Of a stretch of 64,000 nt of DNA, positions 12,980 to 17,474 are shown piece after piece. A program made the translations under genes and the position numbers. The notes beneath the pieces were generated by a model, which was not told where the DNA came from, searched no databases, and saw only the letters and a program-made list of their open reading frames with translations. Position 1 is the stretch's first letter; every line of letters begins with the position of its first letter. Origin of the DNA: Adineta vaga (taxonomy: Eukaryota > Animalia > Rotifera); the NCBI GenBank assembly GCA_021613535.1, contig CP075492.1, forward strand, positions 7,254,001 through 7,318,000, read 5' to 3'.

Positions 12980-13929
12980 TGAACTCTTTTGATCGTCAAA
13001 TTTCACCGAAATATAAATTTGTTGCTCTCAGTAATACTGACTGCTCTTTTTTCTGTTTTAACATAAGTACATAAACGAACAAAAGAAATCTATTTTCGGT
13101 AAGATAGAAGACCTTCATTTTATTGCAATAACATTTCAGAATTCTGACTGAATCAATACTTCTGTCAACAGAGCACGGGCAAACAACTCTATACGTAAAA
13201 CCAAAAATAACAATCAAGAAATACAACTAAACTAAATTGCACCAGCTACACAAGGTAACCATGATTGATGTGTGTTGAAACACGATTCACGTTTCAGCAC
13301 ATTATATTTTGAGAAATCCTCATTTTTGTTGCCCATCAAATACAACATTTCAAAAAATAACTGAAAATGTTAGTGTCTCGCTTTCTTGATACTGAGTGGA
13401 GTAAGAAACAGGAAAATAAGTTGTTGGATGAATAAAAACGTTTTTTTAATGTAAAAAAAGCTTTTCTTGCCGAGAAAAAGTTTTTCTGCTACAAGAAAAA
13501 CCTACGTTTCACATAACAGCCGTCGTCTACTCATTGAATGTAGCATGGAAATAAATTCTTCTGGTAATTTTAAAAGGACGTTGAGACTTATATGATATAA
13601 TTTTCATTTTGGAGACTGTTTATTGACATTGAAGGAAGATAGCTAAAAAGCGAAATTGAAAAACTTATGTTTCCCTCACACATCTTATTCAATACTTTGG
13701 AGACTATTCAGTGATCTGATACAGTCACTAATTTGACTTAGGAGAGAACAATACTAGTTTTGTATAAAACCAGAGCAAGTTTCTTTCATATTATTGATTC
13801 TCTAAGACTGCATGTCAGTGTTTTCTGAATATCCTTGACCCAGCGAATATTTGTTTACTCATCCTTTAATCTACAAGAACCGCTTTAGAATGTATAAGCA
13901 ACAATTACGCGCCCTCTCGTTGTAACGCA

Positions 13930-16396
13930 ATGATTGTTAAAGATTTATGCTCGCTTGATCTATCGGCAGTAAAAGATTCATTCCGTTTACCACATGATTG
14001 TTACATGATTTTTGTGGGACATTTATTGGATGATCATCATCTGGGTAGACTGACGCAAGTAGCTCATGACACAGAAGATTACGATGATCAAGTGGTTGCA
14101 TCTGATAGCCGGTTAGCAATGATGGAAACGGAAGAAATTGAATATTTTTTGGAATATATAACGATATATAAACGAACAGATGTCGATGGACTAATTAATA
14201 ATCGCCAGCGGCATCTTGTTTACGAAGATCATTTCAATCCTGTTCTTTTTGATACGGTTCAAAAAAAAGCTTCATATGAAGAATTGAAACGTGTTTGTCG
14301 TTTTTACGAAAAGAAAGATGGTGTTATCATAGACGATGTAATGAAGTTACATGAAGATCGAACAAAACTATCAACTCCATATTTTCTCGAAAAAGGTCTT
14401 GCTTTAAATGATGCACAGGGAGCAGCATTTGCTCTATCATTTTATACAGGAACGAAAAGTGAATCAGTTAGTCGAGGTGCTAGTCTTATTGCTCGTCAAG
14501 CTAATGGAGAAGTTATTGAAACAAAAACCAAAGAAGAAATGAATGAAGCAGCTATTATTTTGTTTTATTTAGTCAAAGCACTTTCCCATGTTCCTTATTA
14601 TTGGGGTTATGTTACGCGTGCTTGTCAATTAACAGATGCGGAACTTAAATTATATGCACCCGGCTGTTTAATCACATGGATTCAATTTAGTAGCTCAAAG
14701 CGAGGTAAAGAAGTAGCTGGTGGTTTTAATTTTGCTCATCGAAACACATATTTCAAAATATATTCGTTAACTGGTCGACCTATTGGACAATTCTCTAATT
14801 TCGGCAAAGAAGAAGATGAAGTTTTATTTCTGCCACATTCAACATTTTTTGTCTTTAAACATGAAATGGGGTTTCATGGCACGCAACACACGATCTATAT
14901 GCGACAAGTTGAATTAGGTCTTAGCAAATGGTCTGTATTATGGGTTGATGATAGAATATTTGTAGAAAATTGGGAAAACAAGGCTCATATGGAAAGTGCA
15001 GCGACTCGCGCATTAAATATGAACGTCCATTTTATTCCTAAATCATCAACTGAAAGTGCACTAGCATTTTTACGATCACCTTTCGGGCAACGTTTGAAAA
15101 ATAAGTCAATATTTCGTATCGTAACAGATATGAATCGTGAAAATGAAAAACCTGTTCATAATGCTAGCGCTCGATTGATTAAAGCGATACGAAAATTGGG
15201 TTTTAAAAATGAATGCTTAGTGTTTACTAGTGATCAGCAAAATGCAGAAAAAATTATTGCATTCGAACTGAGTTCAGCAGAACAACAAAATGTTACAATT
15301 TCCGATCGTACCAAAGATTTAAGAAGTTTTGTGAATTTTGATCATCCATCGAAATCTTCACAACAATATAATGTTGGAAATACAAGTACGCCCAGTGCGA
15401 AAAATGACGCATATTCAAACAAATCCAACGCTGCTGCTAACGAACTATATCAGGATGTCAGTGCAAGCAAGCAACATAAATCTTATACCGATGTGAACAG
15501 TCACATGATGCACAATTCTAGTAATACAGACATCGATATTCTAATAAGAAACTGTCAACGTCGAAAGTTGGCTAATAGTCGCCATAAGTAAGTTTCAAAA
15601 GTATTACATTGTAATAAAACGATATGTTTATTGTGTAGTTGTGTCTTACTAACCACTGGCTCTTTTAATCCTGTTCATCCTTTACATTTTCAAAATCTAA
15701 TACATGTTAAAGAATATCTTGAAAATGAACAAAAAACTCAATGGAATGTTCTTGCTGGTTATATCTCACCAACACAGTATGTTATTTTGAAATGATTTTT
15801 TTCTTCTGCAGTAATCTATTAGAAATAATTTTACTTTTTAAAGTGATTCATATGTACATTCCAAATTGGGTGATCCGGCATGGATTCCAGCTAAAGATCG
15901 ATGTAAACTTTGTGAAGCAACAATCGAATACGAAGGTACAGAAGTCTCATCTTGGATTAGTGTCTCTCGAGGTGAAAGCAAATGGGACGAGGGGTTCGTT
16001 GATTTCGGTCCTGTTGCTGAAAATCTACGTGATTTTCTTAATAATGAATTGGTTGGTCAAGGAAATATTTTTCAACATCCATTATGCGTCGTTTATGTCT
16101 GCGGATTAGATCATTTCAACAAATGTTTGTACGTTGAAAATATGACCAAACAGCATAATATGGCTTGTGCTATTGTTTTTCGAGTGGGATATGATGAACA
16201 ACAAATCGCTCGTTCGGTAAAAACATCAGGTGCCATTTATATTCCACTAGCTAAAGAACGTACGAAACTTGTTGATGTTAGTTCAACACAAATTCGACAG
16301 TATTTCGAAAATCCTTCATCTACCAAGACAAATATCGAACGGAATATTTATCCAGCTGTCCGCGAATATATGAGCAGAAAATATCGAAAAAAATAA
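13930..16396 (+). CDS. Fusion protein: ADP-ribosyltransferase + CheY-like receiver + NMNAT-like nucleotidyltransferase (exons 13930-15587, 15639-15776, 15844-16396; 782 aa)
   Basis: ART: ALSFYTG, VTRAC, WIQFSSS, EEDEVLFLP. Receiver: VLWVDD..IVTDMNR..LVFTS. After two phase-2 GT-AG introns, NMNAT: LLTTGSFNPVHPLH, GYISPTHDSYV, R..LCE, VYVCGLDHF, DVSSTQIR. Confidence 0.9.
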
Positions 16397-16539
16397 AGTT
16401 TTTCGATGGTATCTCTACAAGACTTGACAAAATAACTTCATTTGTAGTGTGTTTTTAGATGCTTAATTCAATTTTTTTATATAATTATTTTAATCACTAA
16501 ATTCTCATGAAAAGCAGAACAATTATTAGTTAAAAATGG

Positions 16540-17474
16540 TCAATGTCGTTTAGTTGTGAATGCAGATGATGATTGTGGTTTTGTATTGGATGAAAGAAAT
16601 AGAGGAGTAAATACACCTTTCGTTACCAAACTTGCTTTTCCTATCCAACAATAATCAGTTCCGTTTGGGCCATGTATTTGAACACCAGTAAATAATGCAT
16701 ATTGACGATTTTTAAAATGTTCAGCATCGCGTCGAACATATCTTTCTAAATCGATAGTAATTGTTTGATAAGCAGCCATGGTAACTTTAACTAGATCTGG
16801 TGCATTTCTACCGCTTCCATAAGATCAGTGTGTTTAACGATATGTTTTTTTAACATACTCATTTCAATATCATTTTCATCGAAGTCGAGCTTCAATTTAC
16901 CTGAAGCAATTTCGCTTGTGAAAGCAGCGAGAGCACCACATGCTGTAGTCTTTTCTTTCATACCACTGCGTGTTCTATAAACTGAACCAATATTTCCCTC
17001 ATGATCAATGGCAATATGTGTAAAACAATAGTAAACAAAATGACCATCATCTGGAGCATGATGATGTGCAGCAGAAAAACCAGTTTCTCCACAAAATAAC
17101 ATGCCACCCAACGAACCACAAATGAATGCTTGTCCCCACATTGCTTCTATTTCTTCTTCGAAAGGACTGGTAATTTCATCACGACATAAACCAACACAAA
17201 CTAAAGTATTAACATGAGGATAGAAACCTTTGGGTACTAAGGTTTGTTTTGACTGAAAAACAAATTCCTCCAATCCGTAAGCATTTGGAAAGACGCTTTG
17301 TAACTTAGTTTGAAAAGCATCACCATTACTTTTGCCTTCCTTCAAACTTTGACGACAGTGAGGACAAGTTTTGTCTGCATGCGACTGATCGGATGAATCA
17401 ATCAATGAACGACCACTTCGAGAAGAAGTAATAACATGATGTCCATTTTGGTTTTGCGAAGAATGAGAATTCAT
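16540..17474 (-). CDS. LCIB/LCIC-family (limiting-CO2-inducible) beta-carbonic-anhydrase-like protein, apparent frameshift at ~16822
   Basis: GLCRDE, LGG..F.G.TGF.AA.HH.P, HIAID..G..G...R, ACGAL; after the shift PDLVKVT..AY..IT.DLE and YALFTGVQIHG. Intronless CDS. Confidence 0.85.

Follow-up and report, generated by a model that had tools for sequence, protein, structure and literature searches.

Can a single animal polypeptide both make and spend nicotinamide adenine dinucleotide (NAD+)? The question is raised by a gene of the rotifer Adineta vaga, lying at positions 13930-16396 of a 64,000-nucleotide stretch of contig CP075492.1 (positions 7,254,001 to 7,318,000; GC ~31%), which we call the window. 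Its three coding pieces (13930-15587, 15639-15776 and 15844-16396), read and translated one by one, gave a single frame of 782 amino acids identical to a public NCBI protein, I4U23_013010 (P0001), a hypothetical protein of A. vaga. The frame joins an ADP-ribosyltransferase (ART) domain, a receiver-like domain and a domain resembling nicotinamide mononucleotide adenylyltransferase (NMNAT). An earlier note on this DNA had proposed that the protein makes and spends NAD+, which is plausible from the sequence. As the best explanation of the whole we favour, tentatively and with slightly less than even confidence, a cytosolic mono-ART that is gated and carries, on a tether, a nucleotide feeder of its own.

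The two phase-2 GT-AG introns, the 138-nucleotide exon between them and the 782-residue frame described in the earlier note are exactly those of I4U23_013010. The first coding exon holds the N-terminal helical part, the ART, the receiver-like domain and a serine- and asparagine-rich (S/N-rich) linker. The start of the main open reading frame (ORF) is fixed at 13930 by the in-frame TAA at 13924-13926. A further in-frame TAA occurs at 15589-15591, two codons into intron 1, so that retention of this intron would yield a 553-residue ART-receiver protein without the NMNAT-like domain; run X1 (see below) contained no contig with intron 1 retained. The fusion had been described as hidden by splicing. 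This is true of the raw ORF track, where an apparently complete ORF of 553 residues is seen, but not of the NCBI gene model, which already has the exact protein.

Transcript evidence came from four sequencing runs compared over 13600-16800. The contigs of two DNA runs (X7 and X8) retained introns and intergenic sequence. Contigs of the other two (X1 and X2) were restricted to exons, both in I4U23_013010 and in the neighbouring gene, and we took these runs as RNA, which is a guess; for X1 it was made because there was no depth in intergenic 13600-13905 and no intron-bearing contig. One 379-nucleotide X1 contig (depth ~7.5) mapped to 15512-15587, 15639-15776 and 15844-16008, with GT..AG at both joints. 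On this single contig, from a run inferred to be RNA, the ART-receiver exon is joined to both NMNAT-like exons on one molecule rather than the latter being transcribed separately. At the other end of the gene, the X2 contig that reaches the window at 13906 carried 94 extra letters, the final 14 of which match 13241-13254 exactly and are followed there by GT, indicating a non-coding first exon and a 634-nucleotide intron in the 5′ untranslated region (5′UTR). The gene therefore has at least four exons, the first non-coding; this 5′ exon, ending at 13254, and its intron had been missed in the earlier note.

Could adjacent ART-receiver and small NMNAT-like genes have been wrongly merged in the gene model? 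The stop two codons into intron 1, with the complete 553-residue protein that the ORF track shows, would fit such a merge, as would the occurrence of both standalone NMNAT-like genes and 474-residue ART-receiver genes. Against this, the X1 contig connects 15512-15587 to both downstream exons through exact GT..AG joints; exon 2, which starts in phase 2, lacks its own start codon context; and the three-piece structure and the fusion are repeated at four other A. vaga loci, as well as in two further species of Adineta (A. steineri and A. ricciae) and two of the genus Rotaria (R. socialis and R. magnacalcarata). The spliced contig and the recurrence across loci and species largely refute a merge, which we regard as very improbable.

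The recurrence was seen at five A. vaga loci with fused-type NMNAT-like exons, four of which had ART-receiver exons upstream and common exon breaks. Exon-wise matches of the paralogs broke at the same query residue, 54/55, as intron 2. No ART ORF was found upstream of the copy at C5:8.2 Mb, and this NMNAT-like copy is probably standalone. Full-length orthologs or paralogs were found in the two further Adineta and two Rotaria species named above. Among nine full-length Adineta and Rotaria proteins, mean pairwise identity was highest in the NMNAT-like (0.75) and receiver-like (0.74) domains, lower in the ART (0.63) and lowest in the linker (0.41) and the N-terminus (0.39). None of the 26 variants listed for the coding sequence, whether allelic or between strains, lay at a catalytic residue; 14 of them were synonymous and 12 were not. 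In one ART-NMNAT paralog (P0079, 631 residues; G000:C5:5766828-5767388) a TAG lay inside the match to the last NMNAT-like exon, and 11 C-terminal residues, as well as some of the N-terminus, were missing from the annotated protein; this copy may be decaying or mis-modelled.

What does the first half of the protein do? Pfam PF01129 matched I4U23_013010 with 25.6-26.6 bits against a gathering cut-off of 22.3, and it matched all 94 members of the ART-receiver family (best E 3.6e-12). We compared an AlphaFold (AF2) model of residues 1-490 (predicted local distance difference test score, pLDDT, 82; predicted template modelling score, pTM, 0.83) with 48,161 PDB chains. Over 181-215 residues, the fold of residues 93-328 matched those of XopAI (Z 15.4), HopU1 (14.8), Tre1 (6drh_B; 14.6) and rat ART2.2 (13.8). 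The motifs that the earlier note had placed at 14617 (R), 14686 (FSSS) and 14812-14820 (EDE) are R230, F253-S256 and E295-D-E297, and the catalytic residues are conserved in the family (Table 1), confirming the proposed R-S-ExE ART. E-x-E in R-S-E ARTs predicts arginine as acceptor; judged by its sequence, the domain should transfer ADP-ribose from NAD+ onto arginine.

By hydropathy, no part of I4U23_013010 looked like a transmembrane stretch or a signal (the 19-residue Kyte-Doolittle mean peaked at 1.19). Since there is no hydrophobic stretch of transmembrane strength, the protein is probably cytosolic. With the Arg-specific mono-ARTs HopU1 (3u0j), Tre1 (6drh) and vertebrate ecto-ART2.2 (1gxy) it has in common the fold, the R / S-x-S / E-x-E triad and a PF01129 match above cut-off. 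Those proteins, however, are secreted or injected toxins, or ecto-enzymes anchored by glycosylphosphatidylinositol (GPI), whereas I4U23_013010 has neither signal peptide nor transmembrane segment, adds the receiver-like and NMNAT-like domains, and has a sequence identity to them of only 16-18%.

The ART is followed by a domain whose identity emerged from structure. In the AF2 model, residues 334-468 formed five alternating beta-alpha units as assigned by DSSP (pLDDT ~95), and this middle domain matched more than 40 receiver domains with Z 11-12.6 and a root-mean-square deviation (rmsd) of 2.5-2.9 A over 115-120 residues. In the secondary structure of the model, D340 and D341 lie at the end of beta1 and D400 at the end of beta3. 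The receiver Thr after beta4 was poorly kept (T433 in 66 of the 94 family members). The conserved receiver Lys after beta5 was absent, with S or T at that place in 89 of 94 and no conserved Lys nearby. No family member (0/94) matched any receiver-type Pfam family, PF00072 included, at E <= 1; a profile of the middle domain retrieved no receiver from PDB sequences, and a language-model atlas search gave solely sub-threshold receiver-like leads. A six-frame, exon-wise search of the A. vaga assembly (100.8 Mb, six contigs) found no match to HisKA (PF00512) or Response_reg (PF00072), an absence that such a search leaves unproven. Given the missing sequence signal, Lys and kinase match, we predict that the middle domain, although a receiver in its fold and pocket, lies outside PF00072 and is probably not driven by a histidine kinase. 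The CheY-like domain of the earlier note thus stood as regards fold and acidic pocket, but found no counterpart in Pfam or PDB sequence searches or in a conserved Lys.

This domain resembles two-component receivers (PF00072) in its (beta-alpha)5 fold and in carrying Asp where beta1 and beta3 end; it differs from them in matching no receiver family by sequence and in having no beta5 Lys. Iyer et al. (PMC9503650) described cRec, a kinase-independent receiver-like domain (phosphoesterase) of NAD/ADPr-processing systems. The likeness to cRec, compared by description only, lies in an NAD+/ADP-ribose context without histidine kinase (PMC9503650). Downstream of the receiver-like domain, pLDDT fell below 50 from residue 477, within the linker.

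Is the C-terminal half a nucleotide-making enzyme? PF01467 matched residues 557-751 with 27.2 bits (cut-off 21), covering model positions 1-132 of 133. The last coding exon alone had no Pfam match and no meaningful PDB sequence match, so the NMNAT-like domain is recognised only when whole. GSFNPVHPLH, SPTHDSY and SSTQIR were invariant in ten of ten fused proteins, and H566 and H569 did not vary within the fused clade. Of the 68 members of the wider clade, at least 90% kept G16, P20, H22, H25, S52, P53, Y58, K62, R74, G142, D144, S201, S202 and R206 (domain numbering). A profile of the ten fused domains found human NMNAT1 in the PDB (E 2.5e-7), and the clade profile found vertebrate NMNAT1 (E 3e-38). 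With a fold model built from 68 relatives (pLDDT 93), the first 18 Foldseek matches were all eukaryotic NMNATs (fungal, human and plant; E 2.4e-13 to 1e-9, TM score 0.65-0.74), with bacterial NadD next in the ranking. Among the members of the clade are standalone rotifer proteins, as well as proteins of protists that were automatically named NMNAT. We infer that the fused domain is an NMNAT-family adenylyltransferase of a divergent clade, which would synthesise NAD+. Above-threshold PF01467, a fold nearest to eukaryotic NMNATs and intact motifs bear out the NMNAT-like domain of the earlier note, and the placing of ART, receiver-like and NMNAT-like domains in one polypeptide is supported alike by the public gene model, a single spliced contig, Pfam matches, folds and conservation.

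In A. vaga the same NMNAT-like module was joined to several other enzymes, namely a Tyr/Ser-Thr protein kinase (493 residues; L013 1471-2952), a fructosamine-3-kinase (FN3K; 608 residues; L019 1506-3329, minus strand) and probably an EcKL kinase (L018 3-1973, minus strand). Draft models of Rotaria (P0279, P0298 and P0364) carried the module with U-box and kinase, Fork-head or ankyrin repeats. These Rotaria modules were 57-72% identical to that of I4U23_013010 where aligned, with P0364 aligning over only 47% of the domain, and some of the draft fusions may be gene-model merges.

Several results weigh against a domain that feeds NAD+ to the ART, and three of them weaken the claim that the protein makes and spends NAD+: deletion of the 'PNLW' loop, a separate canonical NMNAT, and a middle domain that is a receiver by fold only. 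In a hhalign alignment with frog NMNAT1 (probability 94.6%, 29% identity, 202 columns), the fused domain had an 8-residue gap at the canonical 'LGVPNLWK'. In NMNAT1 structures, the canonical loop holds the Trp that stacks on nicotinamide. Because this loop is deleted, the acceptor substrate of the fused domain may differ from that of canonical NMNATs. The corresponding segment, after the GxD motif, was short across the 68-member clade, with a Trp in only 13 of 68, and G-x-D-H-x-x-K-C was conserved in place of the loop. In addition, the fused subclade has Gly (G98) at a position where the wider clade has a conserved Trp. The separate canonical NMNAT of A. vaga is a multi-exon gene (L030; G000:C6:11325800-11328000, minus strand) with the motifs GSFNPVTIAH, ISPVSDNY, DTWE, GADV..KVW and ISSTNIR, apart from the expanded NMNAT-like clade; the fused domain is therefore not the housekeeping enzyme. 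Fusions with ATP-using kinases are not explained by a pure NAD+ feeder, and NMNAT alone cannot recycle the nicotinamide released by an ART. The joined transcript is known from a single contig of the depth given above, in a run whose RNA nature was guessed. Finally, in the tables of Moris et al. 2024 (PMC10809525; tables S1, S3, S5), the A. vaga paralog FUN_000003, listed there as PF01129+PF01467, was not stress-induced.

These points raise an alternative in which the NMNAT-like domain does something other than synthesise NAD+. It might act on another phospho-acceptor to give a non-canonical dinucleotide, used by the ART or not; run in reverse, from NAD+ and pyrophosphate (PPi) to ATP and nicotinamide mononucleotide (NMN); or bind ATP, NMN or NAD+ as the sensor of a partner enzyme. 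Such roles would be in keeping with a distinct clade that has a conserved G-x-D-H-x-x-K-C and a shortened loop instead of 'PNLW', with a canonical NMNAT encoded elsewhere, and with partners that use ATP, not NAD+ (protein kinase, FN3K and EcKL in A. vaga, U-box-kinase in Rotaria). The single and best NCBIfam match, TIGR00482, also scored 40.1 bits, under the equivalog cut-off of 112.45. On the other hand, all named relatives and all top structural matches are adenylyltransferases of NMN or nicotinic acid mononucleotide (NaMN), and the full catalytic motif set is invariant, favouring catalysis over mere binding. We consider this alternative rather unlikely.

A low-activity NMNAT-type protein beside canonical enzymes has a precedent in yeast Pof1, a non-canonical third NMNAT (PMC13191266). 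Pof1 likewise is a second NMNAT-type protein next to canonical ones, has T/HxxH and SxxxxR motifs and modulates NMN handling (PMC13191266). Pof1 was not among the named matches of the NMNAT-like clade profile, and the two are likened by description only.

How might the parts work together? In the tethered-feeder reading that we favour, the R-S-ExE mono-ART would move ADP-ribose from NAD+ onto arginine. The receiver-fold domain with its three-Asp pocket, packed directly behind the ART, would most likely gate it in response to a bound metal, phosphoryl group or small ligand and not under the control of a histidine kinase. A predicted disordered tether of ~80 residues would link both to the NMNAT-family adenylyltransferase with its intact catalytic motifs, and this enzyme, working beside the ART, would turn ATP and a pyridine mononucleotide into NAD+ or a close analogue of it. 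The ART could thereby keep working, or be controlled, at low bulk NAD+. As to precursors, isochorismatase-family genes are numerous in the A. vaga genome, which also has two loci of the NAPRTase family (best model NF006629); with both families present, nicotinamide could be salvaged via NMN or NaMN.

The feeder concept itself is established in mammals, where NMNAT-1 feeds PARP-1 (PMC5322727). There too an NMNAT-family synthase acts beside an NAD+-consuming ADP-ribosyltransferase and feeds its consumption locally (PMC5322727). NMNAT-1 and PARP-1, however, are two proteins in non-covalent contact on chromatin, with a PARP (H-Y-E, diphtheria-toxin-like) as consumer; I4U23_013010, which would be a covalent form of this arrangement, is one polypeptide with an R-S-ExE mono-ART (cholera-toxin-like, ARTC), a divergent NMNAT-like synthase candidate and a receiver-fold domain between them. 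A second likeness is to NadM-Nudix and NadR, in which an NMN adenylyltransferase of the HIGH superfamily is combined with another enzyme from the NAD+/ADP-ribose network (PMC9503650). Those fusions are bacterial or phage, not animal, and instead of an ART they have as partner a Nudix ADP-ribose (ADPR) pyrophosphatase or a ribosylnicotinamide kinase (PMC9503650).

Feeding of ARTs by NMNATs has so far been known only from transient protein contacts in mammals, and a conserved natural single-chain fusion of ART and NMNAT-like domains would be Rosetta-stone evidence for their coupling. A receiver fold with an intact acidic pocket, in an animal in whose assembly the search found no two-component kinase, likewise raises the question of which signal it senses. 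The earlier note knew of no described animal protein with this architecture. Our full-text literature search found no paper describing the ART-receiver-NMNAT-like combination, in agreement with it; the protein and its orthologs are nevertheless present in NCBI and UniProt with both Pfam labels, and FUN_000003 stands in a published table (PMC10809525).

Is the NMNAT-like domain a fixed part of ART-receiver proteins? All named relatives of the ART-receiver family were bdelloids, and an atlas search with the ART-receiver part gave rotifer clusters only; A. vaga has ~9-10 ART-receiver loci. In a tree of the family, made by a quick method and weak in its backbone, NMNAT-fused proteins fell into at least two well-supported clades spanning both genera. 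One 16-member clade was purely short (~474 residues), and caspase, rhodanese+phosphatase, ubiquitin and PDZ variants lay among others. Relatives carried these alternative C-terminal domains at the same position: caspase in P0111 and P0112, rhodanese+DSPc in P0101 and P0120, ubiquitin in P0021 and P0119, and PDZ in P0088.

A modular stress or immune effector family could have this appearance. Its ART-receiver core would be constant, as sensor, regulator or one effector, and its C-terminal output exchangeable, the NMNAT-like domain altering cellular NMN and NAD+ rather than feeding the ART. Besides the exchangeable domains and the interleaving of variant forms with NMNAT-fused clades, it would accord with nearest ART folds that are bacterial effectors and toxins, and with the flagging of the paralog FUN_000003 in the published tables as a candidate for horizontal gene transfer (HGT), with best matches in Stentor coeruleus (PMC10809525). 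Yet nothing in our analysis ties the ART-receiver family to infection, the small number of loci in A. vaga is not that of a large diversifying family, purifying constraint is similar on all domains, and gene-model errors in the draft Rotaria assemblies may account for some of the short or odd architectures. We judge such an effector family unlikely.

A broader idea extends the feeder beyond ARTs. The divergent NMNAT-like domain might be a portable module of nucleotide supply or interconversion placed on spenders of NAD+ (ART-receiver) or of ATP (protein kinase, fructosamine-3-kinase, EcKL); in the ART fusion, NAD+ would be handed to the ART, or a non-canonical dinucleotide would be used by this ART only. 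We hold this to be quite doubtful. If true, it would provide a private substrate pool during the NAD+ and ATP crisis of desiccation, rehydration or attack. Whatever its role, the analysis exposes an unstudied NMNAT-like clade, expanded in bdelloids and joined to several enzyme types, some members of which are strongly induced by desiccation and radiation in published tables. Among genes over-expressed after desiccation or irradiation, these tables list the NMNAT-like FUN_012219 (log2 fold change, log2FC, ~4.1) and FUN_001721 (PF01467+EcKL, log2FC ~2.7), together with a fructosamine kinase (PMC10809525).

Table 1. Features of the I4U23_013010 gene in the window (positions count from the first letter of the window; fractions are members of the ART-receiver family)
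Feature	Position	Strand	Basis or remark
Non-coding 5′ exon	13161..13254	+	3′ end defined; 5′ end approximate, from the 94-nt loose end of the X2 contig
5′UTR intron, 634 nt, GT..AG	13255..13888	+	donor GT at 13255; acceptor AG 13887-13888; sides joined by an RNA-like contig
Upstream ORF, 12 codons, in frame with main ORF	13891..13926	+	stop TAA 13924-13926; read from sequence
First coding exon, aa 1-552 and 2 bases of codon 553	13930..15587	+	translation equals I4U23_013010 residues 1-552
ADP-ribosyltransferase domain, R-S-ExE type, aa ~93-328	14206..14913	+	PF01129 and fold
Catalytic Arg R230	14617..14619	+	invariant, 94/94
F-S-S-S (STS-type) motif, aa 253-256	14686..14697	+	S254 89/94, S255 88/94
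E295-D296-E297 (ExE) motif	14812..14820	+	E295 92/94, E297 93/94
Receiver-like (CheY-fold) domain, aa ~332-470	14923..15339	+	AF2 model and fold matches
Acidic pocket D340, D341, D400	14947-14952 (D340, D341); 15127-15129 (D400)	+	94/94, 92/94, 92/94
S/N-rich linker, predicted disordered, aa 471-552	15340..15587	+	S 14, N 11 of 82 residues
Intron 1, 51 nt, phase 2, GTAAGT..GTGTAG	15588..15638	+	split codon AA/T (Asn)
Middle exon, 138 nt, start of NMNAT-like domain	15639..15776	+	GSFNPVHPLH at 15658-15687; PF01467 on exon alone E 0.012
Intron 2, 67 nt, phase 2, GTATGT..TTAAAG	15777..15843	+	split codon CA/T (His); interrupts SPTH/DSY
Last coding exon, remainder of NMNAT-like domain	15844..16396	+	SSTQIR 16280-16297; stop TAA 16394-16396

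At the 3′ end of the gene, an AATAAA at 16392-16397 overlaps the stop codon. Tail to tail with the gene, at 16540-17474 on the minus strand, lies an LCIB-type beta-carbonic-anhydrase gene (Pfam LCIB_C_CA, 144.5 bits), on which X1 and X2 contigs were also found. The LCIB family is known from the CO2-concentrating mechanisms of algae; here the gene lies in an animal genome.

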